The translations under genes and the position numbers were made by a program. The notes beneath the pieces are model-generated. The model was not told where the DNA came from. It was given only the letters and a program-made list of their open reading frames with translations, and searched no databases. Shown here in pieces: positions 3 to 44,940 of a stretch of 64,000 bases of DNA. The stretch is from Takakia lepidozioides (Eukaryota; Plantae; Bryophyta): contig CM060734.1 of NCBI GenBank assembly GCA_030704615.1, positions 52,452,001-52,516,000 on the forward strand, given 5' to 3'. Positions within the stretch are counted from its first letter, which is position 1, and each line of letters opens with the position of its first letter.

Positions 3-707
3 CACTTTGGCTGCATGGTGGACCTTCTTGGACGTGCGGGGCGATTGGATGAGGCAGAGGACCTCATTAATAAAATGATAATCAAACCAGATGTTGTGGT
101 GTGGAAGGCCTTGCTTGGTGCCTGCAGAATCCATGGCAATGTGGAGATGGCTGAACGTGTGGCAACATCTATTCTCAAGTGGGATGAACAGGATTCCGCG
201 ACTTATGTGTTGCTATCTAACATCTATGCCGCAGCTGGCAGGTGGGACGATAGTGCAAAGGTGAGAAAAATGATGAATGTGAGAGGGGTTAGAAAGGAGC
301 CAGGTCGCTGCTGGATTGAGGTTGGCAACAGGGTGCACACCTTTGTTGTAGATGACAAATTGCATCCCAAAATTAGGGAAATCCATGCTGAGCTGAGAAG
401 ATTGTCTGGGCAGATGAAGGAGGCAGGGTATGTGCCTGACATGCGCTTTGTATTGCATGATGTGGGGGAGGAGCAAAAGGAATTTTCTCTGTGCCACCAC
501 AGTGAGAAGCTGGCCATTGGTTTTGGGCTGATCAGCACGGCCCCTAGGACGCCTCTGTGTCTCATCAAGAATCTTCGGGTGTGTGGTGATTGCCACACCT
601 CCACCAAGTTCATCTCAAAGATTGTTGGCCGAGCAATTGTCGTACGGGACACTAACCGCTTTCACCACTTTGAAGATGGGGTTTGTTCTTGTGGGGATTA
701 CTGGTGA
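3..707 (+). CDS. PLS-class PPR protein, E/E+/DYW C-terminus (organellar C-to-U RNA editing factor), 5' part outside window
   Basis: Open frame from window start (HFGCMVDLLGRAG), PG box KEPGRCWIEV, deaminase motifs HSEKLA and CGDCH, ends CSCGDYW-stop. Confidence 0.97.
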   Translation, partial: HFGCMVDLLGRAGRLDEAEDLINKMIIKPDVVVWKALLGACRIHGNVEMAERVATSILKWDEQDSATYVLLSNIYAAAGRWDDSAKVRKMMNVRGVRKEPGRCWIEVGNRVHTFVVDDKLHPKIREIHAELRRLSGQMKEAGYVPDMRFVLHDVGEEQKEFSLCHHSEKLAIGFGLISTAPRTPLCLIKNLRVCGDCHTSTKFISKIVGRAIVVRDTNRFHHFEDGVCSCGDYW

Positions 708-2590
708 GACAATGATTTTCTGGAAAGGTGCGAGTGTCTTGCTTCGTTCATTGATCTGTGTAGCTACTTGGTTCATCCACCAGATCCTGAGAATTTGACC
801 ATGATGTACTGTTGATGGCATTTCCGGTGGCATACCCACAGGAAATGATAGTCAGGTCAACCAGCCTAAGTGATGGACTCCATGACTTAACAAGATTACT
901 TCATAAAATACTAGGAGAAAATCTGTGTATCTAGAGCTCAGATGGCACATAAGTTCAGTTGTCAGACCAAGGCTGGCACATGAGAGTCATTACTCCTGGG
1001 TTACCTTTGGGGTCCTTTCTGTAAGGGGGAGGAAAACTGTAGGGATCTCCAGACCAGCCCGCCGCAGAGGTCAGTAAGCATTAGATAGTACATTAGATGG
1101 TAAATTTGATGCCGTGTAATGGAAGTGCCTGGGAGGTTAATTCTCTTCCACGGATGTCAAAGGTCAAAGTGCTGTTAAAAAAATGGAAAAAGAAAGAATT
1201 AAACATATGTTCCCAAATCAACCCAGCAGATTCCAGGATGGGTGGGCGGGCACTGTCAGTAAGATAACAAGGTCTGCTTAGTGGACACGGTGCTTCCCAG
1301 TGTACTTGGCATATGTTGGACATATACGCAAAGTGTTCATGTGCACTTTGTCTTACCACTCCCTAGTGTATATTTCAGTAACTGTGAATCAACTCCAAGA
1401 ATTGACCAACATACTAATTGTAGAGAAGTTAGCATCTCAGCCAGGTCTCATTGTCTGCCATCACAACGTTCTATAATGTTGACAAAAACAAAGTTCTCAA
1501 AAGATGGATACAAGGCTACAATAATGAAAAGGCCTACACAGGTCCTCGTCGCAGACAAAATTGGCTTGCACTTGGTGCTGTAGTTAAAACCAAGAACGAA
1601 CGTATCATTGGATCATGCACTTGGCTATCAATCCAAGAATAATCCCCTCGTGAAACCCCTGCAGGGACAGCACATGCCCCTTTCAGGGAGGGAAAAAAAA
1701 TATGTGCACAGCTCAACCTTGCATCGTAGCAAGTAAGGTCCCCTGCCCGCCTTTATATGTCCTCACAAAGGAACAAGTTAACTTCATCAAGGCATATGAA
1801 TCAAATAAGTTATCAAGAAATCAACCACTAGAGTAATCGAGATTCCAAGAGGCGAAATTTTTTCTTCCTCTCAATGAACGAGGCCCTGATGAACTGATGA
1901 ATCAATACCGGCACTAATTGTCACCGTTAATCTATGCCAGTCCAAATAAAGAATTTGCTGGTCTCCTTGAAGTTCCACCATTGTACATTCTGCACAAAAC
2001 CAAGCAGGATTGTCAGATCTGTCAACCCTCACACTGCTGTCTTCATCAAATACTCACCTACACACTGTGTGTAGCTGCACACACACAAGTAACCACTGGG
2101 TTACTGCACAACCAGGAATATGATTTAGTTACTAAACAACATATCGACATGTTTTGTGTTTCCAAAGGCTGTCCTCAATGTAGACACTGGTTCCTCCATA
2201 CAAGGCACGATTGCAAACTAGACACCTAAACTCCTGGTGAAATGGTCAACTGGAAGCCAGGTATGGTGGGTACTACTGTTTGCTTCGATCCGAACGCAAC
2301 ATGACAAACTACGCACAAGAAAGGTCCTTTGCTTGTTTGGAAACGTCACCAGATTACACAAAGAACTAGCTCATGCAACCGAATTCATTGGCTACATAAA
2401 TCAAGATTCTGTGAAACAAAAAGTCACCTGCAAACTTTGCATGCAGGCTTACCTTCAAAAACTCATCATTGTCCCAAAGAGCTCCTTGATGACTGTGCCT
2501 GCATATTGAAGAGGCCAAGCTATTGTATTTGAATGATGACCAAATGCAGAAATTGCCTGCGATTCGCCGCCGATTAAAGGATACAAACCC

Positions 2591-5500
2591 TCAGGAGGGG
2601 GTCAGGCTTCCATTGTGATCTTTTGTGTCAAACTTCTTTTCCTGTTGACTCAAATCTGTGTTGCTGTTGCTGGCAGCATCAACCAACTCTCTACCAATGT
2701 GGGAACTATCACTATCTAAATAGGTGGAGTCTAAGTCCTTAGATTTACTGAGAGAAAGAGGAAGCCCAACACCATGCAGCAATGACGTCCCTGTCATTTT
2801 CTTTTTCCGGCTCCAGCTAGTTGATGACGACGACTCGTAGTGCACAGGAGGCCCAACACGCAGTTTGTTGATGGTCTCCAGCTTGTGTTGTGTCTCAATG
2901 GGCAAAGTACTAAAGCAGCCACAACAGACGCAGCTACTGTCCAGCCCACATTGTCCAAAGGGCCCATGGGGCGAAATGTGGGTGTGCTTTACACAAAACA
3001 CACTCTGGCACTCTCGACAAAAATGCTTGCTGAAACTCATCCGCCAATCTGACAAGGAATGCCAACGATCAAAGCGCACATTGCACCCCTCACGATGATT
3101 GCATCTGCATTCACCCCCACGATAGCTCACTTCTTGTGAGACAATTACCATTTGTCAAGTCATACGGAACTTTAGCACTAGTAACACAATTGGCCACAAG
3201 CTCTGCTACCAGGTGACTGAGTGTACACAAACAAACATCTTTTCAGGCTTCAGTGGAGCATCTCTGTGAGCCGTATGTACATTGTACAAATCATGCTAGA
3301 GTACGAAAAGCGTACCAACTGCATCTCTATTCATAACAGAGTAAATATGAGAGGACTCAGGTAGGAGTGACATATAAAAGAGCACAAGCATTCTGCACCT
3401 CCTTCTGTATTGCTACAATTGCAGTGAAATTCACGTCTTTCAGAATGACCACCAGTATACAGTCCTGACCTGTGTTTTCTTCTCTTGATGCGTGCTGTGA
3501 GACCCTCTTCAACTTTCTGTGGAGGCTTAGATCCATGCTCTTTGCAGTCCACATCTCCGTTGTTCTTCAAATCATTATCATTACGAGTGGTCCCACTTGG
3601 ATTGTCTGACATTGAGATACTTTGACTATCTACTTGGCTAAAGGAATCTTCAGTACTGAAGTGGATGCCTGGTGGTCCTGTTAAGTCGAAGCCTCTGGTC
3701 AAATTGCTCTCAGCTGAGCATACCCCACTGCTGCTTGACCCCTCTGTACTTCCGACATGACCTTTTCCAAGTTCCTGTACTTGTAACCCACTTTGCAGCC
3801 TGCTCTCAAATAATGAAGGCGAGTTCAATCCTGCTGTGTCGAGATTGGAAGTCAAAAAAGCCTCCCTTTCCATTGCTGTGTCAATTAACATTGCTTCCAG
3901 ACTATCAGCTCCTGTGACAAAACGTGCAGAGTCACTTGCAGCTGATGGTCCAGACCTTCCGATTATAACTCCATACCTAGAGAGGATCCAGATTTTGGTG
4001 TGTATGCAGTTCCAAGTCACGAGAACCAGAACACTGAAACGGGCCAGAGTCCTCAGGACAAGATTTTGACTTTCCTGCCCTTCAACCACCTTCGACCAAA
4101 GCCAACTCAACACCTTCACTTTGAAGATTACCCAAGCTGCCATTGTGACACGGAAACAGAAGCTATTTCTTGAGACAATGGCTAGCAAGAGTAGGCCACC
4201 ATTAAAGGAATTGATCCACGCCCACGGATTACCAGCACTGCTCCTGATAATCTCCTTCTCTTGAAGTGGTGGCAGAAGTACGTGGTTGGGCTCCCCATGA
4301 TGAGGAAGAGGACTAGCATGCTCAAGCGGGGACGTATCGGCATGGGAGAGAGACTGTGTTGAACCAGGAAGAAGCACTGCCATACATCCATCCAGCACTA
4401 TCCAATCAGATGGGCCATGGCCCCCCCATGCCTGTACTCTGTAAGACAATGGCTTTCCAAGATGGACTACATTTGTGTCTAAGAAATATTCCTCGCTGGT
4501 ATCAGCAATTTGCCCCCAAGTTGAGGTAGTGAATGACCAGCGTTGAATTAAGTACTTGTGCACAGGAGGGTAGCCTCGGAAGACAGGTGCTCCCCAATGG
4601 AGTTGTATACCACCAGCACTGGAATTTTCACACTTTAAGCCTTGAGGGGGACCTGACGTGGCCCCAATGCCAAAGATCTGTCGTACTATGGCTTGCGTAA
4701 TCTTTGTGCGGTGCAGTAGACTCTTCACCCCCAACTCCTCTGCCAAAGCCCTGCTCTCATTTTCAATTAGAGCTGGGAAATCCAGACCATTTATTGCAGT
4801 CTGACGGAATGTCTCAGCATACTGTGGCAACTGAAGCCCATGAGTGACCCACTCCACTACGTGGTCAGCTGTCATCATATTTCGCAGATGGTTCTGCAAT
4901 TGTACAATATATCCTGTCAATAGAAGAACACCAAGGTACCACTTGAAGGTTGCCCACGCCATCCGACCTTTGTGTAGCGATTGACCCCTTTGATGCCCCA
5001 AATCCTCTACATGCCGTTGTTTTGGAGGTTGAAGAGTTTACTCTCATTCCGCAGAAGTCTAGGAATCGCTACAACCCTTAGGGAGTAGACTTAAGAAACT
5101 GAGATGTGCAAAAGTATCCTAAAGAGCCCACCACCAGGAATAGTTTTTCATACACAGAATGTAGAATCAAAAAGTGATTTCACAAACTTCAGCACAATTG
5201 CCTATTATACATTTGACGGAATGAACATGAGACACTTCTGGGCAAGACACATTCTTCTATACATTTGCAAAATTTGCAGAGAGGACATGCCCTTTCAGGA
5301 ACACCTATCACACCAATATGGGGAAAAAGAACACAAAAACCAAAAGCCTTCTATGTTGTTCTTACCAGCAATTCGTCTGCAGAGATGGCATTTCCCCCAT
5401 AGCTGAAGCTAAAGTCAAATTGATGAGACATTGATGAGTCGGTCATCCCCTCTACTGGTCTGCAATCATCCTCCTCCTCTGATCCATCGGCCAATACCAG

Positions 5501-7545
5501 TCTTGCATCAACTGATTTCAAAAACTGCAACCTCCAACGTCAGTGTAAGTAATGGCACGAAGACAACATGTATGTATGGAAAAGAGACGAGTGGGAGGAA
5601 TTAGACAGAAAGTACCATATCAATGTTAGAGCCTACTAAACTCTGAACTAACATTTGAGGGATTAAAAGATAGCCACATCCAAAGGTAAAGAGAAGCATG
5701 CGAGACGAAAACAACGGCATACCAAAACCTCAAGGAAAGAAACAACATGAAGGAAGGAAACCAGAAAGAATGTTATTTGTATCACTTACTGCATCAATAC
5801 AAACAGAGATGTAAATTGTTTGGTGATGTTCATAGATTGCACAACTTAAGTGTGGCACTGGTCCTGCAAGGGTTGGAAACTGTAATCTCCGCTAGTGGTT
5901 GCAGGCCACGGTGTGCGTTAACCTGTCTATCCTTGGTTGGGCTTCCCTGAAAGCTTTGGGGACTGAAAGTAATTCTGGAAAGATCTGTAGGGTTTGAAAT
6001 CAGGGGTGCACTGCTTTGGGTTCACTTCTCCCACCTCTTTGGTTGTGCCTTGGACTAGTCATGGGCCTTGCTAGAGAGAGAGCTGAAAAGAACTCCCACT
6101 TACGGCTTAAAAGTCTGTTCTTGATCATCTTGAATGTATACGTACTTAGGAGTGTGAGAACAGTTCATAATTTCTTCACAAGGAGATTCAACACAACCCT
6201 CTATCTTGAAGCAACTTCCTAAAATGAACATTTGAGACACAAACAATTCCTTGGAACTGAAAAGTCTTGAAAAAACTGTAGAACTGGCTTCTGGAAGTTG
6301 GCCATGAAATACTACACATGCAGATTGCCAAGAGGATGGCTCATAAATGCAATAAAACAAGAGGAGCCTTGATAAGAACCTTGGTGGCTTCGCCCTGCTC
6401 AATCTCTCCGTCCCCATCCTCATCAACAGAGCAAAAAAAGGTTTCCAAATTGTGCTCGAAGTCTGTGCATCACGGTACCAGGCCACATGTGTCACAGCTT
6501 GACCCCATGTGCCCCTGCCCACCATGACGTAATAAGCATGCAAAGCAGATGACACTTGAGACATCAATAGGGAAGAATTTTTGACAAGCACAATATGACG
6601 TTTTTCTCACTCTCACCTATCATCACAGAGAGGCAGATATCTGGGCGGGCAAGGCAAGCAATAACAGTCCTACAAATCACCTGCCTAATTGAAGGTTGTA
6701 ATTCGGGTACAGTGGATAGGTTAGAGGCACGACGGTATAAAACATGGAAACAGAATAGCTAGGAACGTTCCTCTTGAGCCATTTACAACAGTCCTCCCAC
6801 ACTTGTGACAGCTAGCAATGACCACCCATAGACTGTGGCAAGTCCTTCTCAGGAGCAATCTCTGGTAAGACTCCCCTTTCTTCTCCCTCCTCACAGATAC
6901 CAGCTGGTAATGATCCTTTGAAATCGAATCCCGCACCTCATAGCTACCATCACCATCACCTTACCATTAGGCTACTCGTCGCTGCAAAATACACCTAGGC
7001 GTAGTAACCCCTAGCAACCAAACCCTCGGACAGAAACGTTGAAAAACCCTTCCGTCTCTCAAGAACTACTCGAGCCTGTCCATCTCACAATGCACTTGAG
7101 GCCACAAAGATTGTGCGCGTTTTCTCTCCATTTCAAATGCAGGCAAAAGTGATCATGGATTTTCAGCGCAACGACATGGCGAACAATTTTTTCCGCTTAG
7201 GATTCAACAATGTACTTCGGTCTGAGCCTACAACGCAGAATTTTATAATGCACTCCTGCATGCAGCCCATCATTCAAGCTTTTCTGCAAAGGGGAATAAA
7301 TCCCCATTCTTGACCTTCTTTTACACATTCCTAAACATGTAGCCAGCAATAGAACTCCAACCTCTCGATTTCCAGCTGGCTGTTTTGGGGACGAGAAGCA
7401 ACAATAGCAGAAACCCTAAAGAGAGGAGGAATCTCCAAAATGCACGCTTTCCGCAGCTGAAGCTCGGTTCCCTACATCTAGACATACAGCGCCGCCCTTG
7501 TTTCATGTCGTTCCGCGGTCCTTGATTCTCACAATTGCCATCCAT
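2591..7545 (-). CDS. STIM-like membrane protein: signal peptide, EF-hand, SAM, FN3, TM, FYVE-like Zn finger (about 787 aa; exons 7545-7362, 6462-6380, 5524-5366, 4893-3470, 3104-2591)
   Basis: Manually spliced with GT-AG introns and matching phases (1,0,0,2), 2364 nt without internal stop. Hydrophobic FWRFLLSLGFLLLLLLVP; EF loop DEDGDGEIEQGE; SAM TADHVVEWVTHGLQLPQYAETFR...HRTKITQAIVRQIFG; FN3 IQLHWGAP...YRVQAWGGHGPSDW; hydrophobic segments about 3960-4230; C-terminal KHFCRECQSVFCVKH...CCGC. Start codon uncertain (7545, 7506 or 7485). Confidence 0.82.
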
Positions 7546-8155: not shown

Positions 8156-8314
8156 CAATTCTATTGAATTGTTGGCACACGATTCAATTGAATTGCGAAT
8201 TGGCAATTCAATTGAATTGTCAACTCACAATTCAATTGAATTGCAGTCAACAATTCAATTCAATTGTCAACTCGCAATTCAATTGAATCGCTAGTTGGCA
8301 ATTCAATTGAATTG
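8156..8314. repeat. Subterminal array of the 16-bp palindrome CAATTCAATTGAATTG (7 copies, 23-24 bp period)
   Basis: Copies start at 8156, 8180, 8204, 8228, 8251, 8275, 8299. Confidence 0.9.
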
Positions 8315-10933
8315 TAATCTATAATTTTTAACTTATTTCTGTATATAATATATATGTATATATTTAAATTATACATATATACATACACAGATATAAGCTA
8401 CAAATACATGTTGCCCGTCTATTCTTGCTGTCCGTCTGTCAATCCTTTGCCCGTGGTAAGGCTTGAGCCCAAGATGAGAGAGAGAGAAGATAAAATGTCT
8501 TGTCGAGACATGGACAAGACCAAACAAGGTCTTTGTCAATTTGTATGACAAATCAGCCTCATAACGAGGCACTATCAATCACTCTTCATTCATAAACCAG
8601 TCTGATGACATGTAACAGATCTCACAGTTCATGAAATCTCTGGGAGGGGGGGTGGGATCATATAATTACCACCCATGTTCCCATTAATAAACTGGAGAAG
8701 AAGTTCCAGTTTTCATATAGCCATAATGGTCAGATTAGAGCAGTAAACAGCTTCTAAACTATTTACACATGAAGGGAAAGTCCACACATCTTGTTTTTTG
8801 TCCCAAGACCTAGTTTCAATCTGGGGCCAGTGTATAAATGGATTCAAAAGGTTTTGAGCAGTAAGTGATTACTGATAGTCACAGACTATAAAGAAATCCA
8901 GAAAAACATGTCATGGTATATGCCTTAGTAGTAAAGCCAGTCTATCCAGAGCCCGTTTTAGGTCTTGGGGCAATCTGTATCTACTCCAGTAAGGTACTTG
9001 CAAGGTCACAAACAAGTAGAGAAGGACAGGAACCCATATGGTCTGCATCAGGCAGCATACATGGCCTAAAAACAAAGGATTGTGGTTCCTTATGTCCTCT
9101 TACTTAGCTGCTTGATATCATTCAAGCCATAGCATCATACCAGTCCCATAGACCGAAATAAAAAGCTCATGTTGTGCTGTAAGACAGCAAATCCAGCATC
9201 ATCACGTAGTGTAGCAGAAATCAAAGGCAAGAGTCTTTAATAGAAAGTATGTGTTCTAATAAAGCTCATCTAATGTATTAATGCTCAACAGGAAGAGTTG
9301 GAAACATAGCCAGAAAGATCAAGAAATGGGGGCAGATTCGAATCAGCTCCCTGAAGAAACAGCTTGAGTCGACTTCACTTCATCTTGCTAGTTTTCAATC
9401 AATTGCAAGCTTCATGAATCATATTAAGTGAGGGCCCTCACCTGGTCCCATCACATGCAGTCAAAAAACAATGAAGTTAGTGAAGATGTGGAACCCCAGG
9501 TGAATATCAGGCCTCACGCTTGTTATCGCTGTACAACATGCGTTCAGAAAGCAAGAAGAGATCAAAAGCAAAGCAAAGATATTCCACAACCTGAAGTGTT
9601 TGTGGAAGAGGATTCGACATAGCTCCAAGAACTCGATAATCAACAACCCAAACAACAATGGTTTGCTGAAATCTACGAGCATTTTATCAGGTGAAGGGAC
9701 TTCCTGATGGTTTAAGAGCGGCGCTGGATCTTAATGACCATTGAACGGAACGGCAAGCAGTCACAGCTTAAAGTAAGTTGTCCGTCAAGGGAAGAGACAA
9801 CCTCATTGAGGGAATTGAAGCTCAGCCGCCTTTGTATACCCCAAGGGGATTTGAAAAGTACTGGAATCTTGCCAGAGCACTTGTAGGCTGTCATAAAGCT
9901 TCTCCATAGCCATCAGATTCACAAGATTTGTGCTTAAATGATCCCTCTGACACCATCTCTCAGCTCCATCAGAATCATAACGCACGAGTATCGTGCAGAG
10001 TTTAAGGGCGGAGGAAGAGATAGGGCAAACCTTCGCGATTTCATCCAGAATAGATGAAAAATAGATAATGTAAAGTATTTCCCTAATTCCATCATGATGT
10101 CATCCAGTAGTGATGGCATCCAAAAGTAGAATCTGGCTTTCATTAGGGTTTAGTTTTCATGACCAAACTCATCCAAAGAACCCAGTAATCAGAGAAATTG
10201 CTATAATGGAATTCCTCCATTTTCGTGATTATATCCATTGTGGATTAAAAAAGGTTTAGACAACATTAGTCCAAGCCGGCCTGGGTTTTGGAAAAAGTAC
10301 AAGCAAATTCCTTGTACAGAGGGAGAGGGAGAGGGAGAGTGAGAGAGGGAGAAAGAGCGCTTGTAAAAGCGGGATTGTCTCTCTTTGTGGATGTTGGTGC
10401 CAATATATGGCTATGTACATATACCAAACATGATACCAATGTAAGAGTATCAACGTGTAAGAGTTTGATATATTAAACTTATATAGAACGCACATCCCAA
10501 CTTCAACATGATACCTTTGTAAGGGTATCGAAATTTTTGATAATTCTCAAGATGAACATATGTTTTGTTTTCTTTGTCCTAGACTAGATACTAGTGTTAG
10601 GGGACTACATGGTGATGCAGGGGAAGCCTTTCATCAATTGTCAGGTTTGATTTTGCCTGTTTTTTTCGGAGCCAACCATGTTTCTTTTGCCAGTGAATCA
10701 CAGGAAGCTGCTGATCTGTCTCCGTCTCTGGCTCTCCCTTTCTCGCTGAGACTGAGGGTGGCTTCAAAACTCCACAATTTCCTGAAGGGTACAAGAAAGA
10801 GGGCCAGCAAGAATAGACGGGCAATATGTATTTTTAGCTTATACTCTTATATGTGTATAAATATAATTTGAATATATACATGTACATATATATTATATAT
10901 TATATACAAAAATAAGTTAAAAATTATAGATTA

Positions 10934-11047: not shown

Positions 11048-13689
11048 CGCACTTTTAGGGGTGATCAAGTGAATTGCGATGCATTTCACATCAAGGCCTT
11101 TTTGGAATTCCCTATCTGAACAACCCTCTCTGCCAAGCCATCGGCCTCAGGATGATCCCGAGAAGTAGTGCGGTGGTCTATCAAGGCTTTGTCACACAAT
11201 GCCTGAAACTCCTCCAAGAACTCTTTCCCTTGGTCCGTGAGTACCTCAGCTGGAGCACCGAACCGGCTAAGTACACGATCCAAGAATGCATACGCAGCCC
11301 CCTCACTAGTCTTATCAGGCAATGGAACCAATTCGATCCACTTGGAGAAGTGCTCCACCTCACCAACACGTACTTGTTGTGGCGCATGGTCAGTGGCAAC
11401 AGCCCTGCGAAATATAGACTCCACCTGTAGCCCATTCCCATGATCGGAAGAGGGTGCAATTGTGGTGTAGGGGCGTTGAATGAAGCACGCACCCTGTCAC
11501 ACACCATGCACCTAGCCACAAATTGTTGCACCTCTATCACGCCACCAATACTGCCCCTGCAGTAGACTATGAGTACGTCGCACCCCAAAATGCCCCAACT
11601 CCTTATGGGCATGTCGCACTAACCGTGCCCGCTATGTTGGGTGAGGCACAATCCTCACTCGACCATCCTCCCACACTCGGAGCAAGTGTGTCCCCTCCCA
11701 CTTGAACCTCTTGGCTCGTTGTAGGATCTGATCCCTCTCCTTGGCAGTGACAGTGGCTGTCGTGTCTCCAGTGCGGAGATAGTCCAACACAGCTGAATCC
11801 TCATGTATATCTTTAGCGCCACCTTGCCCATTGATGGCCTCAGGGTCCTCAGACACTCGGTCTACAGTCATCCCTGTTGTAGGTCCAACCTGGCCTTCTG
11901 CTGCCAAGATACACATAAATGCAGATGCATGTCATCCGGGCACCATCTCCTCGTCCGTCTTACCATGCCACCGAGCTCCAGTGTCATCATGTTGGCTCGT
12001 GCATGGATTGCGACTCAACCCACCTGCATCCCAATTGACCAAACCTGGTCGATGCACAACCTGAAAGTCATACTCTTGAAGTATGAGTGCCCACCGTGTA
12101 AGCTTCCCCGTAAGCTTGTCTGACTCCATCAACCACTTGAGTGACTGGTGATCCGTGACAAGGGTGAAGAGATTGTCGTATAGATAGCACTTGAAGTGTG
12201 TAACGGCCCACACTGCAGCTAAGTACTCTCCTTCATATGAGCTATACTTAGCCTCTGCAGCGTTGTTCGAGCGGCTAACATAAGCCACTATGAACTCTCT
12301 TCCCTCATCATCCACCTGTGTGAGCACCGCTCCAAGCCCCAGCATGCTCCAATATGTATGCAACTGAAAAGGACTCCCCCTGATAGGTCGTCTCAAGATG
12401 GGCGCCGAGATCAACCTCGCCTTGAGCTCTTGAAAAGCTCGTTCTTGCTCATGTTCCCACTGCCACTCCTGGTCCACCTTGGTCAGCTTGGTTAGAGTCT
12501 TTGCAATGGTACTAAATCCCTTGACACTCAATCTGGTTGTGGAGAAACTTGCACTTCCCCGGATGTAACTTCAATCTTTGCGCCCTCAAGCGCTCAAATA
12601 CCACCTGAAGGTGTCTCTCATGCTCCTCCACCGTAGCACTAAAGATGATGATGTCATCTATGTAGCACCGAGCAAATTCCACCCCTGCTAGAATCATGTC
12701 CATAACTCTCTGAAACTCTGCAGGAGCGTTCTTAAGCCCAAATGGTAAGAACCACCACTGGTATAGGCAATCCTTCCCGTGCTCATTGATCCCCCAGAAT
12801 GTCGTCTTTTGCTTATCCGCCTCCTTGATCGGCAACTGGTGATATCCGGATCGTAAATCCAAAGTGCTAAAGACCTTCGCATGCCCAATGGCATCAAAGA
12901 TCTCCTCTGGTGTTGGCATGACATACCTATCGGACTTGGTCTGACGATTTACAGGCCGGTAATCACCGCACATACGTCTCTCCGTCCAATTGCCATAGAC
13001 ATCATTCTTGGCTGGCATCACTGTGGCTGAAGCATACTCTCCACCAGATAGCTCCACCAAACCAGCCTCCCAGAGGTCCTGAGTCCTCATCTGAATCAAG
13101 GACCTCTCCATGTCACTATATCTATAGGGTCTCCGAAATATTAGCGTGTCAGTGGCCAATTCAATGCAAATCTCTTGACCCTTCAGTGCTCCCAAGTCCT
13201 TCAAACTAAAAGCAGTTCCTGTAAGTCCTCAAGAACCGCCGTATACGTCGTCTCTCTCCTCCGGTTACTATAGGTCCAACATCAGGCTCCCAGTTATCCT
13301 CCGTGACTGCAATCTTGAGTCTAGCAGGCTTAGAGGTAGAAGACGCGTCTCGTGGTTGCTATGCTGCAACCTCTTGAGCAGTGACCACTGTCTGCTCTGT
13401 CAGTGACAATGTCTCATCCTACCCCATCATCCCATCCTTGAGGACCTCCTCAATCCGAGAAAAATCCCCAACCTCATCCATCACCGCCGCCTTGGTTGCC
13501 AACTCCCTCTGAACCTCGAGCACCTCCCACGTGTGCCATGGATGCGGCCTGCACCTCGTGGTCATCACCTGTTCGCCCCCACTCGCTGCATGTACCGTCT
13601 CGGTAGGCAAAGAGACCATCAAGGGAAGTGTACTTCGTACTTTGCGCTGCTGAGCCATAGCCAAACTGATAATCCAGGTCAAGCAATTG

Positions 13690-14610
13690 AGATCCATTGC
13701 TTGCCCCAACACCTGACGACGTGATGCCTCAGAAAGAGATGGCACCGCCGTGGTACCAGTGGTAAAACCCATCACCCGCTCGCGCTCGTTAGCATTGGGC
13801 TCCACTAATTGCTGCAACTGGCTATCCCACAAGAGGCCAGGTCCTCCATCCCGGAAAGCATGAGATCCTGGAAAGCTGAGCAGTGTAGGCAATGTTGCTC
13901 GTGGGTGACCCACCTTATTGACCACAACCAAAGGTGATTGGTCATCGTGTCTCACACGCTGAGACTGCCTCCCTATGTCCAAAATGCTATCCACCGTCAG
14001 GTTTGGTGGCCGCTGCATCCCATCAAATGCACGCTTTGAGCAGTGCAGGTGGTATTAAGTTGGTCCACCATAGTCGTGGGCGATGAGCCCGTGACCCCAC
14101 TGCAGCTGCATCCAGCAACACTACTGACCCAAGCCAAGACCGCACTTGATGTACGTTGGCTATCACCTTGGCCCGAGAATCACCCATCAATGGCACATTC
14201 TCCAAGATATATGCCGGAGAGTCTGTCTGCTAGAGCTGTAAATAGCGCAAGACCCTCAACATCTCCCAAAACAGGCGTGATCTTGAGTCTTGTAATCCAT
14301 TCTCATGTCCGGCTGATGAATGCCCTTGGCAGGGCCATCCTGCCACTACCAAGTGAATAGGGCCAACCTGCTCCAAATCATGCGCCCCTAACAAAGAGAT
14401 GTCTGCTGGCAAGGCTTGTTGGTATCCACGAACTGCAGACACTGGCAACAAATCAGGGTACTGTTGCACCAACTGAGCAACATGGCGCAGTGAGACGCGT
14501 CGTGCAGTCTCATCCCTCTCCACATATATGTAACGTCGAACTCGTACACCTGCCTGCAGCACTGTAGCCAATCCAATGCTGATCCCGCCAAACAAGTCCA
14601 GAAGACATAT
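13690..14610 (-). pseudogene. C5 cytosine DNA methyltransferase domain inside pol of copy A
   Basis: Motif I LLDLFGGISIG, IV AGWPCQGHS, VI YILENVP, VIII AHRPRLWW, IX ERERVMGF, X RRQVLGQAMD; one stop (14230) and one frameshift (about 14035). Confidence 0.92.
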
Positions 14611-17283
14611 GTCTTTATCCGGGCACTGCCACACAAGAGGTGTGGTGTCCAATGGCGACAACTGAGATGATCGTGGTGCAATCTCCGCACTCTCCTCCTC
14701 TCCTGACGGTACAAAGGCCTCTACCCAGGCTTGTTGCACTCGTCTATCAGCAGTCTGCTGCAAATCCTTGCTCGTACCCCACAATGGAGTGTGAGCAACC
14801 ATGGCAGGCAACTCCGCCGTACCATGCATGTCATCATGCTCTGCTGGAGGTGGCACATCCTCTGCATGGGCATTGCCCTCCAGCAATTCTCCAACCCAAC
14901 TAACTGCAGCTGTGAAGGCTGCTAATGTTGGCATCTTGCCCCGCTGGGCAGCAGCAAAACCCCCAATGAATGTCACAGGGAGCTGTACACGATGACCATC
15001 CCCCGACTGCCATCCAGGCCTGTAGGATGTTGACTCCTCCCAAAAATCCAGGGTGAAGCCCATGGGATACAACACTACCCCACCAACGAGGACATCATAA
15101 GAGACCGCGTCTGTCACAATGGCCTTGGCTCGCATCAATGAGCCATCTATAGGATGATCCGGCCGTAGTCTAATGGCCAACTCACACCGTGTCATGCCCC
15201 GAGCCTGCTCTGATCCTCCCAGAGATGTCTGTATCTGGAAAGGACAAGGCTCCATATCCGCTTCCATGAGGCCCAAACCTGCAATAGCAGCTCTGCCCAA
15301 TATCAGCGGCTGAGCTCCTGAGTCCAACAAGACCCGCAATGGCCAATACCTCTTGCCTGCCGGTCCACTCAAAGAGAAAATGTCATCCTGGTTGTCTAAC
15401 AAGACAACTCCAGGTGTCACCATGGCGCACTCAAAGGCTGGCCTAGCTGGCAGCTCCATCAATCTGGCAGCTGCAGCTTGCCATGGCGCAGCCGTGGCAG
15501 TCTTGACCCTCAAATCGGAGGATCCCTCTGCCACTACACCTTCCACTAATTCCGCAGAAGATGAAGTGACCTCCCCACTGTCGCGGAGTGTTGCTGGTAG
15601 TCTGAACACTGCAGCTGGTCTTACCCCCGGCGTCGCAATCATGGTTGCCGAGAACAGTGGGGCCTGACACATAGAGGTGGCCGCCCCCAACAACACACTG
15701 GTTGCTCTAGCCTTGGCAGCAGGTGTCAGTGTTGCACGTGTAGCTCTCCCCAATGGCACAATAACAGCCTTTGCTTCGGTATCTGTCGGGCGGGAACTAG
15801 GCGCCATGGATGTCGTTGACACTGTCTCCGCCAAGATGAATGATTGAGGCAACCTAGCCTGACGGCTTGTCTCCCCACGCTGTGGATCCAACTCCACCTC
15901 TGTACCTCGTGGCTCATGAACTCGTGCTGCTCCTCGAGTGACGGCTGCAGCAGACTGCACCTGCACTAGTGGTAGTGCTGCCCCACACATAGATCTCATG
16001 TCTCCCATGTCTACTCCATTAGGATGACGTTGCTGAGGAGGAACATAAGGTGGACCCTAAGGTCTTGGAGCTGGTACCACCTGAGCTGTGGCCATGGCAG
16101 CAAGCCTTTGCTCTAGCTGCTGAAGTCGGTTGGTCATGCCTTAGTCAACGCCCTGACCTCCACGTCCTTAGCCATACTGTGCTTGCTCTCGTCCTGCACC
16201 TCGTGCCTGACCGCCTCGTCCTCTCTGAGGTGCTCCACCTCGTCCTCGGCCACCATTGTTCCCTTGGAACTGGTCTCGCCGCAACTCAGGGTGCAAGTCA
16301 TAACACTGGGCATCTCCATGTCCATACTTGTCACAATGCCCACACTGCAACTGTGCAGGCTGTGCTTGTGCCGGCCTTTTGCCACTCTCTAGGCAATCTT
16401 TCTTGACATGGGGTCCTCCACATGTCCAACATACCACCCCTGGTTGTTGTTGGCCTGCAAAAGAAGCTACTGGCCTCTGCACCTGAGGTCCCTTGTAAGC
16501 TCCATGGAATTTGGGTTGGGCAACATTGCCCCCCTGACCACGCTGTTGGGCAGTCCCTTGTGCCTGTTGGCTAGCAGTTGCGCCTCGTGCAGGCATGTCC
16601 TTGTCAAATCCAATGGTAACAACTTGCTCCTCCACCATGTTGAGCTCAATCCGCTCAGTCAGCAGAAACACATCTGCTAATGTGGGTTGGGCCGCTTGTA
16701 ACAGGGTTGCATCCCGCACCCTTCTCCTGAGCTCCTTGTCCAAAATTCCATACCAAAACTGGACTGCCTGAGCTTCAATAACCCCTTGGGTCACACTTAT
16801 CAAGCGCCATATACGAGTGTAGGCCTCTCGCAAGCTCTCACTGGATTTGCGCTGGAAGTCTTGCAAACTTTGCAGCTTCTCTGTGCGTACGCCTTGGTAG
16901 TTCATCTGCAACTCCTGGAAGAACTCCACCACCGGGCTGAATCTAGGCACATGTGTTATAGTCGTGGCAGGAGGAGTAGTAGCACCTTCTGCAGAAGTAC
17001 CGGCACTACGTGTTCCACTACTAGTGATGGCAATGGGAAATATTGGTGCTGATGCAGCTACTGGTCGCGTCGTGTCTCGAGTAATGGAGACGTAGTCAGG
17101 TGACCAATACATCCTCCACTCCTCAATCTCTATTTCATGTCCTCGCCTAAACTCGTGGTAATCGTCCATAGGCGGGCCTTCCAAATGCTGGAACAGACCC
17201 TTCCACGCCATGAATGGGGTGAACAGCTGTGGATTGCGCATCTGCTGCAAATCACACCAGCTGTCGAACTCCTGGATAAAGTA

Positions 17284-20200
17284 CTCCTGCAGAATACCCC
17301 AGCCCAAAAACCCGGACTGACTCTTGCCTCCACCTATGGAAAGGTTTAGGCCTACCGAGAGGGTGGAAAGCTATGGGAAGGAGAGACTAAAGCAATTCCT
17401 AAACCCAGCATGCCCTCATCCCGACACTCTTCATTTCCTCTCTAGCCATACACTAATGTCAAAAAGTGACAGATGTGTTACAAACAGACAGCTAAGTGAT
17501 TATCCCTGACTTGAAACAGCTTCTTCAATAGACCTCATAGATGTGGGGAGGATCTAATTTATATAAGAAAAATTCTATAGATTTTTGGTCAGGTCCAAAA
17601 AATTAAAACCAGGTTTAGGTAGGTAGATTTCCCATTTCTGTAGGTCCCTGCGCAAGTTTTGGGTCAAACGGCCTCGGTATGCCAAAGTTATGGCCAAACA
17701 AGCTCTATGTAATTTAAATTAGATCAAAGAACGAATTTCTTTAATTTGTCACACCCAAAACATTCTCGACATTAAAAGCTGTTCCTAGGTTATCTACGGG
17801 TTCGGAACATGTTCATGTAGTTCTCACATACTCCCTGGCAGCGTGGCCTATAATTCCCAGGATTCATTTGTGTTTTACAGACGCACCACCAGAGGCTTGC
17901 TCTCCTAATGAACTGCTCTGCTCCAGCCAAGATCCGTGTTCTGCTCCAGCCACGACTCCCGAGAGCTTCGATCCTTCGCCTCCTCTCACTGCCAAGTTTA
18001 TGTTCACTATTGCAGCAAACTGGTGTGGCTTTGCCTTGGGGAGTTAGGCTACACCTCAATTGTGCCTGACTCATCAATGGCCACATTAGGCACCACCTGC
18101 AAGCTCATTTCAGCAGCACCACGTTCTACATTGAGCACCAGCTTGTGCAGGTTAGGACTGCGTTTGATGGTGTCCACCAGCTCAAACATGAACACTTCCC
18201 TGCTCCCCAGCTTGAAGAAATTCCAGATTCGGCCTGATCTACAGTATCCTTTGTCGCTGAAGCCCAACACTCATTCTCATCACAAGAGCTTCTTGGAAGA
18301 GTACTGACAAGCTGGTCCAACGCCCGGGCCTCGTTTAGCTTTGCAATCGCCTTCACCTTTCAGCGCAATCGTTCCATTCCGGAAGTACTCTGATGCAGGT
18401 AATTTAGTTCTCGTACCGCCACCATGCTAAGATGCAAAATGAGTACAATCCCATGGACCTGCACCTCTTGAGTCTTCAAACTGAATTATGTGGTTCCTTA
18501 ATAGTGTCTTAATAGTGTCATTGCAATGCAAGCAGACCGAGACTCAAGGAAGCCAAGTTCATCATACCTTCCAGCACCTTCACTCAACAATCTGAACTCT
18601 GACAGTGTGTATAGGTCCCTCTCTAACCTTTCAAAGTGAGCCAGTTAGCTATTTTCTGTTTCAATATGTCGAATCACATATGCAGGCAGGCTGACTCAAT
18701 CTGCCATTACTCGGTGGCATCTCCATACCTGCGACTGCCCCGCCTTTCTTCTTCGGTCTTGCTTTTCTTTTTCTAAGAGCGAGCATCCACTCATGCATCT
18801 GCTAGTCCGAGACGAAACTGGATCATACGGGCTAAAGCGCTTGTGAAGAAAGTGGCTTATCCCTGACATATCATAGCGTTGCTGGTCAGTTGGCTCCAAC
18901 ACGGCTTGGCAGTAATGGCTACACCATTCGGAGCATTGCTGGTCATCTGGTTCCAGCCCTTACATTTTCGGTGCCCTATTGCACTTAACACCAACGGCAC
19001 CACCTGAACACCCAAAATCTGTTCATCATTGTGCGACTTCACCATTGAAGTGGCATATGATCACTCATGTGCAAATACAGATCATGCCCCTTTCAAATCG
19101 GGTCCCTTCAGCCTTGTAGAAACAAGCATTTAGAGAATATCTGTCATGAACAAGATCATGCAGCTTGTCTTTGCACTGGAGCACTAACAACACTTTCATC
19201 TCTTCTCCATAGGTGTTCAAAGGGTAGCAGGTGCAACTGCTACAAACATCTACCAGTAGCTTCCTTCCTTTTCATGCTTCAGATTTGTGCCAGAGGTCAT
19301 TCCGTTGTTGACCAACCAGTATCAAGACTCTAAGCCTTAAGGTAAAATACATAACCAAGTTGTGATCTCCACAAGCAGCCCGCCTAAATTCTATAAGCAG
19401 ATCCTCTAGCAATTGGCTCCTTTGGGCATTTCTTAGCACTTGAACACAATACACGAACCTAACTCAGTCGTTCACCACTTCCAGTTGATACGAACTCTGA
19501 CGCTCGTGAATGAGCAAGGCGCTGCTGCCCTAGATACTACCTTCTTCTTCTTCGGCAACTCGCTGGTTCATCATACGTTGTTGGTTTATCACACAACAGT
19601 ATGGCTGCCCGCAAGCCGATACAAGACAGTATGAAGTAGCCGTTGTCTACGCATACAAGGCCTCTACAAAGTAGTTAATGCCCCACGCTGCACTTTCCCA
19701 ACCTAAGAGTTGCAGGCTGCCTCATCCCTTCGCCATATGCTCACTTGTTATGGTGCAATCGATATTGGTTACATGCCATCTCTATTCAGTACTATCACTT
19801 CTGCACAGAGAAATCAGCAGCTAATCCTTCTTCTCAAAATTTCATTTTTCTCTTAACGGCAGGTTTCCTGGACACGAGTTATCCCTTCAGCTGCTAATTT
19901 TCCACTCAATCTTGCACTCACTCAACTGAGCTGACATCTTAAGGAAGCTTCAAAAAACAAAAGACTAGTGCTAACTTAAGACTCGTATCTCGCACTAAAA
20001 GACACAAGTTCATCTCTATCGAGTGATATGAAAACTAAACTTACACTGGTTGTTGACACAAAACACGAAATACAACATAATCACTCGTTAAAATAAGAGT
20101 CAAGCCAGGGGCACCCCAAGCTATGGGGACTCCACCCCACAACATCCTACTCTCCCTCCATAAGTACACTCAAATGCTAATCAACAAGGGAGCTCAGTCG

Positions 20201-20377: not shown

Positions 20378-23300
20378 TCTTTCGAATCTAAATGATCTGA
20401 TTAATCTTGATATAGATGGTGCATTTTTGGTATCACAAAATTATTATCATCACTTTCTTTAAGTAACAATCTATCTACGTCTCTTGATTCTTTGCATTCG
20501 TGTAACATATTGATGTGCGATATGATTTTGTTACTGAATCCGGAGATAATGTTTGTATTGAATTGTAGAGATGCTTGCCATGTCATTGGCTCTTGTATTT
20601 TTAACTCGTGAATAGAACGCCATGGAATGAATAAAATGCAAATTCCACGACTATAGTTTTTTGGGTCATTTTAAATTGAAGGGATTTTGAATTTTTGTAG
20701 AACAGGCACCTTTGGAGTTATGAATTCATAACAACTATTTGTAGTGGATTGTGGATGGGCAGCCAAAATCTATGTCCATTGAGACCTTTTGATTTTCCTA
20801 CTAGACTGGAGTACTCATAAGGAGATAAATTTTCATAGTTCGTCGGTCTCTGTTGGTAGTCAATGCGGTAATTGTGAAGTATGAATTGGTCTCCATGTTT
20901 TGATTTATCAATTTTAAATGTCTCATAATGTCCGTCTTGCTCATTCTTATCATCGGCCGTATTAAGTGGATGTTGTTATTGTTCCTATATCTAGTACGAT
21001 AGACTATACCATGGTTTGGATGAGAAGTTGTAGTCCGTAATATGATCTGATATTTCATGAGGTAGCTTATGGCTATTATGGCTGAAATTTCTTGTTGAGA
21101 CCCAATTGTATTGAGGCACCTTATAAAAGACGACGACTTCGATCTACAGAGCTTTTGTCGATCTTTCCATCGTAAGTTGTTTCAATTTTTTGGACAGCAA
21201 TTTGCAATAGCGAACACATATGGGAGGTGTAAATGGACGTTTTTGTAATGTAGTCTGTGATATAATATATTAGAGCTTTTCCATCTTTACCAGATGCAGC
21301 TATGAGTTTGAGATCGTGATTGCATCTGCATGCTATAAGTATCCATGGATTTGCATTATTTAACCATTTATCTGTGCGTTTGATTGAGAGTAGTTTTGTG
21401 TCAGGATTGAATTTTGTCTCAGCAACCAACGATGACGGATAGCCATATTGACAAAGGTTGTTTTGGGCATCTTTCTCATGTTTGTAGCATGCCGGATTGC
21501 AAACGTGTCTGTTGCAAGTGTTAAGAAGCGTATAGACGTCATGTTTGAAGTTACTATGAAAGTCTATGTTGTTGGGATCAGGAGGTCTGGTAGTGCATGG
21601 ATGGATCGTGGTTTTTTCGTTCTCGGTATTTTCAGAGCTAATGTTTTGGAATGGATATAAATTTTTAGTGATGATGGCATTGAGATATTCCAATATAGAC
21701 GTCTTGAAGAGGTGATCATTCTGCAGTTTTTCCACGAGTTCATTCAGATCAGGTGCATTTGTTAACAATATAAGAGTGTGAATGTGGAGACTTCCATTTT
21801 TTGCTGATTCATAGCAACCGTAGTGTCCTTCTATGGTGCCCAAGATTCTTGATTGGGATCTATATTTTGTCCTTCTTTTTTCTTTTGCACGTAAAAGATA
21901 TTTGAATGTTGCATTTACAATGCTTTGAACGAAAGTTCAGGTTTGTCTAGGTTCATTAGATATTGAACGTGAGACTCCAAAGTAAGTTTTCGAGGCCAAT
22001 TACTCATTTCAGGAACACCAATACCAAAAGGAAATAATGTTGGAAACATACATAAAATCAGTTGTGGATTGTTATATTCATTTGCCATATGCGAATCGTG
22101 AGTGTAAGAAAGGTACATATTATCTTCCATGTTTTTCAAAGCATATCCATCAAAGTCAACAAGGCATGAGGTCTCAGTCACTGGGCTATTAGATGTTGTC
22201 GTAGAGTTATGTGCGTTCTTGATGTTATATAAATCTGTGATATTTGTACGATGCTCATAACTGGCAAGGTCAATATCAGTCGATTTGAAAATCGTCTTAA
22301 GATTGATTGTGGAATACCATTGTCGGAGTATGTGTTTAAGGTATTTGTATCTATTATATCTTGTTTGTAGCCTACATGATTTTCTTTTAGCCAAATAATC
22401 CAAGGTGATACGACTGCCCTACGGACCCACAATAAATCACAATCATTTATCGCATCTAGTGGAGGGTAACTGCTTCCAACAAAATGGACCACCATAGTAT
22501 CAGAGAGAGTGTGCAATGGAGATGGCATGGATTTGATGAGGTTACTTGCATGAGATGGATCTTGTGCAAAACTCACCAAGTTTCCTTTCAATGCGAAGTG
22601 GCCTTGTCCACCTTTGTTTACGTAACGCAATTTTAATATTACACGACAACGATATTTTGCCACTAGTGATTGTTCTACGATTGTCACCACAGGTAGGAGG
22701 TTGCGAACATCGCCGGTCCAAAGGCCATTTACAAGGGATAATTTGGGTAGACTATTGTTTTTTAATGAAACATGACATTGTCTACATATATGTGACGTAT
22801 GATTTTGTAATGTGATACCCTTATATGATAGAAGCATTCCGTTCAAGATAGGGGAAATATGAGATGCAGAGTTCAAAAGTTGTTTTGGAACGTAGATGTC
22901 TTCTGTGTGGTTTGATGGAGTTAGTTTTAGTAATGTCTTCATAGAAGGTAATTTATGAGGTATGTCATTGATATTGTAGATCACAATGTTACAAGGTTTA
23001 TGACTTTGGCTACACACACAACATATTTGCTTGATAAATGTTTTATTTTTCATATGTTCATTGAAGTTTTGCAAACATTGCATATTGTTTTAAATATCGA
23101 TTTGGGGTGGGAATTTGTGGAGTTCATTGATATGATCGATTTACTCCGAAGGAGTTTTATCTTCAAAACATTCATCTACGATATCTCTTTTGATAACATA
23201 CGTTTATGTTTTTGTTTTTGTTTTTTTTGTTTTTTTTTTTTTTTGGATTCGTGTTCTTTTAAAGTGTTGCAGGGAGATCTTTTTGAAGGGCATATAAAAT

Positions 23301-36200: not shown

Positions 36201-36598
36201 GCCGGAATGGCAGTCAGGGGACGGTCGACGTGCACTGCCTCCAGTGCGGTTTATTGGGAATATAGCGGTGGATCATAGGAACATGATGCCCACATTGGCT
36301 GCATTCTCAGGGGTGGTGGCTTGGGGTTGGAAGAAAATAGCCATGCAGATGATAGGCCACCACCTGATGAGGACAAACAATTGGCATATAAGGCTGATTT
36401 GCTTCCTCATGTGTCTGTTCATATTCCACTGTGGGGTACAGTTGGGAATTTGCATCGAGTAGCAGACGAGTGTGTGCACCAAGCATGGCAGGAGGCCTAT
36501 CCATCGGTAGGTGAAGGGAGTTCAATTACATCACCTGGACCTCCTCAATTAGCTCCATTGGACACAGTGCCTAATATCTGGCAACAACCTGACTTAGG

Positions 36599-44291: not shown

Positions 44292-44940
44292 TGTCAAGGA
44301 CGAGAACACGACAAAACACAAACAAAAGATCAGACTAGAGGTACAAGACTAGACAAGAAATCAAGGTCGGCGTGGCCAAATGTATGGTAGGTGAACATGA
44401 ATCAAGATGATCTTTATAACAATGGACAAGAGTATAAGATACTGGAACTCGACTCGGATACTGGAATGCTGGAAACTGGACTGGAATACCAGATACTGGA
44501 AACTGGACTGGATACTGGAAGCTGGATTGGAGTACTGGTCTTGGAACAAGAGTAGCTTGAACTTGTGTTGGCGAGACTGAAGAGTGTCCAGTCTTGTCTC
44601 CTATATATACTGGCTACTAAGAAGCTTCCCTAAGAAGCTTCTCCTATGGAGGTTGCTTGCTGGAGAAGTTTCCAAGATTAAACAAAGGTTTCTTGATGGA
44701 GAAGCTTTCTTAAACAAATGAGGTATCTTGATGGAGAAGTTTCCTCCAAAGGAAGTTTCCTGAGCAGTTTCCCAAGTTACTCTTGGTAATTTGGTAAACT
44801 TCCGGTAACTTGGTAAGTAATGGTAAATCATGGTATATCATGGTAAATCACGGTAAATCATGGTAACTTCCGGTAACATGATAACTTGGTAACTTCTGGT
44901 ATTTACTCCTGGTAAGTTCCTCTGGGCTATGTCCGTGATA
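44292..44940 (-). repeat. 5' LTR of the chromovirus with TATA box and self-primer
   Basis: Ends TGACA at 44292 on the minus strand; starts TATCA (inferred mutated TGTCA) at 44940; TATATATAG at about 44601-44609; 10-bp GGTAAATCAT repeats. Confidence 0.8.

Follow-up and report, generated by a model that had tools for sequence, protein, structure and literature searches.

The STIM proteins of animals (STIM1, STIM2 and C. elegans STIM-1; PDB 2K60, 2L5Y, 6PW7; Pfam PF25578, PF07647, PF16533) are the closest described systems to the protein family analysed here. Both share an N-terminal signal, a canonical and a hidden EF-hand, a SAM domain with particular insertions and an anchor helix, a membrane segment, a predicted N-in-lumen orientation and a long cytosolic tail. 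In contrast to STIM, the Takakia-type family has a longer EF-loop linker, a fibronectin type III (FN3) domain and a spacer between SAM and membrane, and a FYVE-like finger near its C-terminus, with extra amphipathic helices in land plants; it lacks CC1, SOAR/CAD and a consistent polybasic tail. The metal-ligand spacing of the finger is like that of the FYVE-finger proteins WDFY3/Alfy, Vps27/Hrs and EEA1, from which it differs by the absence of WxxD, a degenerate RRHHCR patch, an extra conserved His and Cys recalling AN1 fingers, and its coupling to a putatively lumenal Ca2+ module. ER-anchored FYVE tethers exist, for example Protrudin; like them, a membrane-anchored protein whose lipid-binding finger sits on a long tether would be well placed to act at a contact site.

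STIM has been described as absent from plants, algae or diatoms, or as being of near-animal origin (PMC7016017, PMC11085791, PMC11894410, PMC8318260, PMC11506743). The same papers leave open how the Orai channels of those lineages are gated and whether land plants have store-operated entry.

The gene described here lies in a 64,000-nucleotide stretch of DNA (the window) of the moss Takakia lepidozioides. The layout of its product, as read from sequence, is a signal or anchor, a canonical EF-hand, a hidden EF-hand, SAM, FN3, a membrane segment, a disordered linker and a FYVE-like zinc finger (Table 1).

Gene structure and family range

The gene is real and spliced. It runs on the minus strand from 7545 to 2591, with five coding exons of 184 + 83 + 159 + 1424 + 514 = 2364 nucleotides, in phase, giving 787 codons plus the stop at 2591. 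Its four introns are all GT-AG; the joints 7362/6462, 6380/5524, 5366/4893 and 3470/3104 are seen in spliced contigs of two transcript runs, which come from separate studies of the same organism. The sequence-only reading had joined three small upstream exons in phase to the long SAM/FN3 reading frame. The contigs of both studies confirm this junction and include the EF exon; the long frame does lie in exon 4, but the exon ends at 3470 and not at the stop of that frame.

All four introns recur with identical position and phase in the Sphagnum and Selaginella orthologues, which, together with the spliced contigs, rules out a splicing artefact or a pseudogene. Sequence searches were run exon by exon or with full-length homologues, and exons 2, 3 and 5, each taken alone, match moss or lycophyte proteins (70, 47 and 70% identity, respectively). 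Contamination or transfer from an animal is also ruled out, since the gene nests with mosses inside the land-plant clade of the tree and adjoins a DYW-PPR gene.

The transcript extends to at least 7701 on the 5' side. A second ATG, at 7506, corresponds in the alignment to a Met of two mosses, so translation may begin there and give 774 residues. A 5-residue likeness between an upstream reading frame of the leader and moss N-terminal extensions is out of register in the alignment and was judged to be due to chance. Intron 2 of human STIM1 (c.270, phase 0) may interrupt the gene at the position corresponding to intron 2 here; two green algae lack intron 2 in the intron comparison, so this coincidence carries no weight.

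Table 1. Coordinates of the Takakia gene and its encoded features, numbered along the window
Feature	Position	Strand	Basis or remark
Coding exon 1: basic n-region and hydrophobic stretch (about 7390-7431), signal peptide or signal anchor	7362..7545	-	contigs, hydropathy
Exon 2: first helix and canonical 12-residue EF loop	6380..6462	-	contigs, homologues
Exon 3: EF1 exit helix, variable linker, degenerate (hidden) second EF loop at about 5372-5407	5366..5524	-	contigs, model, homologues
Exon 4 overall: SAM, FN3, membrane segment, cytosolic linker	3470..4893	-	contigs
STIM-type SAM domain	4666..4875	-	last helix hydrophobic at STIM1 L195, L199, F200 positions, then conserved Gly
FN3 domain immediately past SAM	4384..4659	-	homologue model, fold search
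Predicted membrane segment with the family's conserved Arg at its end; weakly hydrophobic here	4171..4227	-	hydropathy
Two amphipathic or hydrophobic helices, kept in land plants and Zygnematophyceae	3982..4164	-	membrane-hugging, or two extra passes
Ser-rich linker, poorly conserved, without coiled coil or SOAR	3472..3981	-	sequence scans
FYVE-like (partly AN1-like) Cys/His zinc finger, start of exon 5	2915..3103	-	PI3P basic patch degenerate
Coding exon 5 up to the stop codon; untranslated exon part runs on to 2453	2591..3104	-	contigs
3' UTR intron, GT..AG, beginning 138 nt past the stop	1990..2452	-	inferred from a contig loose end matching 1960-1989

Homologues with the same domain order are found in Physcomitrium (XP_024374730/1, LOC112281924), Selaginella (LOC9637430), Ceratodon (KC19_1G322100), Ginkgo (Gb_01581 and Gb_13753) and Chara (CBR_g40157). 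The sequence-only reading had overlooked the family's reach well past land plants: named members come from mosses, lycophytes, Ginkgo, green algae (chlorophytes among them), centric diatoms, oomycetes and haptophytes, and none of the named matches is an angiosperm protein. Annotations of the homologues are limited to hypothetical, 'Calmodulin', 'EF-hand', 'SAM' or 'FN3 domain-containing', and an ESM Atlas cluster from oomycetes that shares this domain order is automatically named 'Calmodulin'. Algal members may already have been noted in automated databases or earlier reviews. PTHR15136, which we take to be the PANTHER/InterPro family of STIM homologues, may already include these proteins.

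Relationship of the EF-SAM unit to STIM

The EF loop at 6389-6424 carries D, D, D, G, I, E and E at positions 1, 3, 5, 6, 8, 9 and 12, so that the ligand positions of a canonical N-terminal Ca2+-binding loop are intact at the sequence level. This first loop is canonical in 91 of 105 family members, with Glu12 in 99%. The second loop of land-plant members lacks Asp at 1, 3 and 5, and in a model of the Sphagnum orthologue it forms a hidden EF-hand paired with the first through strands E18-20 and E65-67. Many algal members have acidic residues in the second loop, and 13 of the 105, algal, retain two canonical-looking loops. The anchor role of L195 and L199 has been described for STIM1 (PMC11506743); their equivalents are hydrophobic in 99-100% of the family, and both the profiles and the Sphagnum model place a STIM-type SAM, with this anchor helix, on the EF pair.

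The family EF-SAM profile is collinear with STIM2, C. elegans STIM and STIM1 (E-values of 1.7e-15, 9.3e-15 and 6.9e-14) over positions 3-146 of 147, while calmodulin-like matches are confined to its EF half. With the SAM-only profile, the three STIMs give the top single-domain scores (42.5, 40.0 and 37.7 bits), aligned without the gaps that the Shank SAM requires. A search with the EF-SAM-FN3 model returned FN3 matches exclusively, so the EF-SAM of the Sphagnum orthologue was modelled alone (pLDDT 87). Its top Foldseek matches are three STIM structures (TM 0.55-0.62, identity 21-25%). C. elegans STIM is also the best match by VIA (Z 12.7, rmsd 3.3, 130 aligned; next non-STIM 7.8), and STIM clusters fill the top rows against the Atlas. 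The Atlas feature search with EF-SAM alone reached a score of just 0.81, and a word-index search with the EF-SAM alignment, limited by its length window, did not find animal STIM.

EF-hands and SAMs are promiscuous modules, and with an identity to STIM as low as that of these structural matches and a Pfam EF-hand_STIM1 match in just 20 of the 105 members, all under cut-off, the likeness might have arisen by convergence, through the joining of an EF-hand pair and a SAM that are unrelated to those of STIM. This is very improbable in our view: the SAM alone picks STIM first and has its insertions and LFG-like C-terminal end, and order, spacing, packing and topology are the same as in STIM. From profiles and modelling, the EF-SAM unit is homologous to that of STIM, as the sequence-only reading had supposed. 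The EF and SAM motifs it quoted are indeed present where it placed them, and the STIM1 SAM stretch it cited agrees with the PDB chain.

Membrane orientation and cytosolic region

The N-terminus is hydrophobic in 53 of 61 members. A segment with KD >=1.6 lies between FN3 and the finger in 60 of 75, and net charge is higher past the membrane segment than ahead of it in 49 of 60. This family-wide hydrophobic N-terminus and positive-inside charge support a predicted lumenal or extracytosolic EF-SAM, in line with the luminal side proposed earlier. N-glycosylation sequons in the presumed lumenal part show no enrichment (67 observed, 97 expected) and give no support for a lumenal location. The number of membrane passes is unsure: in the Takakia copy the segment is weak (KD about 1.4-1.5), and two further hydrophobic helices come after it.

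Where SAM is directly followed by the membrane helix in STIM, FN3 and a median of 50 residues intervene here. Of the CC1-CC3 coiled coils and SOAR/CAD (PF16533) of STIM, SOAR has no match in 57 cytosolic linkers of the family, and a simple, uncalibrated heptad score for coiled coil is positive in 2 of 60 members. Judged from its sequences, the family does not belong to the STIM family, as it has no SOAR/CAD or coiled coil.

The Cys/His finger of exon 5 had escaped the sequence-only reading. This finger resembles FYVE structures, with the two-zinc Cys-rich ligand pattern visible at family level and Pfam FYVE found in 11 of 33 members; the Takakia copy alone has no Pfam FYVE match. Among the PI3P-binding motifs WxxD, R(R/K)HHCR and RVC, the first and last are absent here and the patch reads SKHFCR. 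Some mosses and algae have basic C-terminal ends, which the Takakia copy and Selaginella do not.

FN3 is common in ectodomains and typical of cell-surface proteins (many receptors are among the fold matches), FYVE domains belong to the endosomal machinery, two tandem EF-SAM-FN3 units, as in receptor ectodomains, occur in some haptophyte and unassigned members, and no ER-retention signal was identified in the protein. These features would suit a cell-surface or endosomal/vacuolar receptor-like protein, whose EF-SAM-FN3 part would respond to Ca2+ in the apoplast or in endosomes, or act in adhesion, and whose finger would serve endosomal sorting, with no ER-store role. We consider this unlikely, since the other known occurrence of EF-SAM is in the part of STIM that lies in the ER lumen, the lack of sequon enrichment is unusual for a surface ectodomain, and the PI3P motif is degenerate in green-lineage members.

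A candidate store sensor and its possible link to Orai

Our preferred reading, held with moderate confidence, is a lumenal Ca2+ sensor that clusters upon depletion and signals via its finger. The protein would have the topology of a type I membrane protein and reside in the secretory system, with the ER as the likeliest compartment, and would sense lumenal Ca2+ through a STIM-type EF-SAM switch. By analogy with STIM biochemistry, the last SAM helix would dock in the EF-hand cleft when Ca2+ is bound, keeping the protein quiet, and EF-SAM would open and oligomerise when lumenal Ca2+ drops. Since SAM would be uncoupled from the membrane helix by FN3 and the spacer of about 50 residues, and a coiled-coil relay is absent, the output is probably clustering. 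A large number of weak FYVE-like fingers, each on its long tether, might then bind with greater avidity to an acidic membrane or to a partner protein on the far side of a contact site; an Orai channel as the most likely partner is a guess.

A Ca2+-dependent switch cannot be displayed by AlphaFold models. Ca2+ might merely stabilise the EF-SAM fold of a constitutive structural tether or scaffold, which we regard as quite improbable. The EF-SAM of STIM2 remains folded without Ca2+ (PMC11506743), FN3 could brace the unit, and the two canonical-looking loops of some algal members could mean tight, always saturated binding; however, two things recall STIM: the SAM anchor helix, which defines the switch, and, in land-plant members, the single-site design.

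A more specific proposal is that this family fills the role of the missing store sensor that activates Orai in non-flowering plants, green algae, diatoms, oomycetes and haptophytes, driving store-operated Ca2+ entry through plant, algal and stramenopile Orai by a SOAR-independent contact of the finger or juxtamembrane helices. This is a tentative possibility, somewhat less probable than not. The plant Orai partnership already suggested finds some echo in the range of named members, which loosely mirrors that published for Orai (from the basal land plants to gymnosperms, plus Chlamydomonas, centric diatoms and Emiliania, with oomycetes listed in a tree legend). This overlap is at the level of lineages, and in one paper nine oomycete genomes were found to be without Orai. 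Gating as in animals cannot hold unchanged, because SOAR/CAD and coiled coil are absent and FN3 and a flexible linker separate SAM from the membrane. Many genes, such as flagellar and sperm genes, were likewise lost near the angiosperm stem, so that a shared loss of sensor and Orai is not specific.

The family provides a concrete candidate for the control of plant Orai, a calcium channel that is so far an orphan. With a candidate that is named, single- or low-copy and present in tractable models (Physcomitrium LOC112281924), the Orai question becomes directly testable; a chlamydomonad member suggests a Chlamydomonas orthologue. If the family does activate Orai, the EF-SAM sensor, and perhaps store-operated Ca2+ entry, would date to early eukaryotes and not to the animal stem, animals would have swapped an FN3/FYVE-like output for the coiled-coil SOAR module, and angiosperms would have lost sensor and channel together. 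Even without Orai contact, the homology places the beginnings of the EF-SAM sensor much earlier and shows this sensor connected to another output.

Gene structure and transcripts

Contigs from two public runs on the same organism, produced by two studies, lack four introns with GT..AG borders (see table), and since these are cleanly removed, the runs can be taken as RNA, which was beforehand a guess. The three small upstream exons, which the sequence-only reading had joined in phase and whose confirmation by RNA it had called for, are thus established, all four junctions being seen in the contigs and the frame staying open to the stop. The gene reads in a single frame of 787 codons; a second ATG at 7506, aligned with the Met of two mosses, may be its true start. 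Single exons and full-length database homologues served as homology queries. Exons 2, 3 and 5 individually find moss or lycophyte proteins, and exon 1 gives no protein-level match in its single-exon search, as is usual for signal sequences. Position and phase of the four introns are identical in the Takakia gene, Sphagnum and Selaginella.

The canonical EF loop and the FN3 domain described from the sequence are indeed present, the latter with a titin-like fold (Z 15). That description lacked the Cys/His finger of exon 5. A profile of 33 family fingers resembles FYVE structures (WDFY3, E 2.8e-5; Vps27; EEA1), and by Pfam 11 of the members match FYVE and 6 match zf-AN1; unlike in PI3P-binding FYVE domains, the PI3P-binding motifs are degenerate.

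Two contigs represent a diverged second transcript, with 79 differences from the window over 4335-4893, which also covers 5366-5524. Its introns at 4893/5366 and 5524/6380 are those of the gene and its first exon is different. Because of these two common joints, it probably comes from an expressed paralogue elsewhere in the genome. Two family copies each are known in Sphagnum and in Ginkgo, where a second one was found.

Features of the gene and of its surroundings in the window
Feature	Position	Strand	Remarks
Coding region	7545-2591	-	ATG to stop
Exon 1 (184 nt)		-	basic n-region, 14-residue hydrophobic stretch
Exon 2 (83 nt)		-	canonical EF loop
Exon 3 (159 nt)		-	exit helix, variable linker, second loop retaining the I-S-x-x-E half alone
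Exon 4 (1424 nt)		-	SAM (Pfam SAM_1 and SAM_2 above cut-off), then FN3
Exon 4, 3' of FN3		-	weak membrane segment, two amphipathic helices, Ser-rich linker
Exon 5 (514 nt), start		-	Cys/His finger
Introns	7361-6463, 6379-5525, 5365-4894, 3469-3105	-	absent from contigs
3' UTR intron	1990-2452	-	begins 138 nt past the stop; by the usual rule, could make the mRNA a nonsense-mediated decay target
Upstream ORF, 22 codons	7626-7694	-	in the transcribed 5' leader; position not conserved in two mosses
Repeats rich in palindromic CAATTCAATTGAATTG	8160-8330		short, degenerate; ~600 nt upstream of the gene start
PPR gene 3' end	15-707	+	RNA editing factor carrying E, E+ and DYW deaminase domains; convergent with the gene, whose last exon lies near 1960-1989
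ORF ending in C-5 cytosine DNA methylase match	14230-16008	-	E 4e-8; in retrotransposon-like sequence, about 11100-17300
DUF6570 ORF	22178-23083	-	E 1e-28; domain associated with Helitron-like elements
Retrotransposon RNase H and integrase fragments	40465-41478, 44929-45807	-, +	opposite strands
1160-codon ORF	57297-60779	+	no Pfam match at E 0.001
Other ORFs	35317-36462, 54343-55326, 16168-17307		no Pfam match at E 0.001

Likeness of the EF-SAM unit to STIM

With exon 4 alone, the best SAM matches in the PDB are STIM1, C. elegans STIM and STIM2. An EF-SAM profile of 105 sequences aligns end to end with all three of these STIMs (E 1.7e-15 to 6.9e-14); calmodulins match its EF half and nothing more. 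With the SAM-only profile, STIM SAMs come top per domain (42.5, 40.0 and 37.7 bits) and align without gaps, where Shank requires gaps of one and four residues. Shank2 scores lower (35.4 bits), and liprin comes ahead only through the sum of three domains. The proposal of a STIM-type EF-SAM also agrees with the AlphaFold model of the Sphagnum unit (pLDDT 87): Foldseek ranks three STIM structures first, as the Atlas does STIM clusters, and the model superposes on C. elegans STIM with Z 12.7 over 130 residues, the next non-STIM reaching 7.8. Helical folds may reach such Z values by chance, and weight is thus put on the agreement between sequence and structure; convergence is regarded as a very improbable source of this likeness.

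The first EF loop is canonical in 91 of the 105 members. In STIM1, L195 and L199 hold SAM to the EF cleft (PMC11506743); the equivalent positions are hydrophobic in 99-100% of the family. The equivalent of L179, important for STIM1 multimerisation (PMC11127010), is hydrophobic throughout, with Leu in 83%, the numbering being deduced from the profile alignment. Since the second loop still has Asp in its first position in many algal members and looks canonical in 13, the hidden EF-hand may have degenerated independently in animals and streptophytes.

Topology and proposed mechanism

Unlike in STIM, FN3 and about 50 residues separate SAM from the membrane. SOAR gave no match in ten whole family proteins and 57 cytosolic linkers, a simple heptad score gave no coiled-coil signal, and the post-FN3 region of the Takakia protein matches nothing in the PDB. 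Because SOAR and coiled coil are absent and an FN3 spacer precedes the membrane, the family falls outside STIM proper; it may work like STIM despite this.

Most members have a hydrophobic N-terminal stretch (53 of 61) and a membrane-like segment (60 of 75). Net charge is +2.3 after this segment vs +0.1 before, and is higher after it in 49 of 60, a comparison whose p-value is optimistic since the members are related. A zinc finger requires the cytosol. Taken together, these features would put EF-SAM-FN3 on the non-cytosolic side, as proposed earlier for an ER-luminal EF-SAM; the compartment may be a lumen or the cell exterior, and N-glycosylation sequons are not enriched in this part. A receptor at the surface or in endosomes is judged rather unlikely.

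What we consider most likely is that lumenal Ca2+ would hold EF-SAM closed, that depletion would open and oligomerise it, and that, once clustered, the tethered fingers would bind a facing membrane or protein with greater avidity. The switch is suggested by STIM homology and conserved residues, and the clustering output by the architecture. A constitutive scaffold is an improbable alternative to this mechanism. Orai is a tentative candidate for the finger target because of lineage overlap: the channel is reported in land plants from basal groups to gymnosperms, and also in Chlamydomonas, in centric diatoms and in Emiliania. Oomycetes are named in the legend of one Orai tree, while an older survey detected no Orai in nine oomycete genomes.

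Family range and significance

With exon 4 as query, 21 close homologues were recovered, those named being from Ceratodon, Physcomitrium, Sphagnum, Selaginella, Diphasiastrum, Ginkgo and one haptophyte. A 50%-representative search gave 774 matches, the best 150 of which were examined. Among the matches listed, at least about a hundred proteins carry EF-SAM, FN3-repeat proteins set aside, and at least 75, near-duplicates included, the complete run from EF-hand to finger. Named members come, among others, from Closterium, Spirogloea, Chara, Chlorokybus, Picocystis, Pyramimonas, Pedinophyceae, Edaphochlamys, Pycnococcus, Ostreobium and two centric diatoms, Stephanopyxis and Ditylum; there is also a 70-member oomycete cluster. 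No angiosperm is named among the matches listed; as many are nameless, loss in angiosperms is likely, not proven. In a SAM-FN3 tree, the Takakia gene lies within the land-plant clade (97/95), grouped with mosses (94/87), which fits vertical descent.

One sub-family (database proteins P0019, P0037, P0038, P0039, P0048, P0061 and others), whose single named member is a haptophyte, carries EF-SAM-FN3 twice in tandem ahead of the membrane segment. Four further proteins, P0023, P0024, P0075 and P0036 (Closterium, Edaphochlamys, Chara), extend 1250-2160 residues past the finger and may be gene-model fusions.

No description of the family was found in the accessible literature, key subscription reviews being outside its scope. 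Such proteins may already be contained in the PANTHER STIM-homologue family, presumably by automatic assignment. STIM has been stated to be missing from plants, algae or diatoms, or to have arisen near animals (PMC7016017, PMC11085791, PMC11894410, PMC8318260, PMC11506743). The family contradicts this repeated statement, and through it a standing question could be put to the test in moss and in algae.
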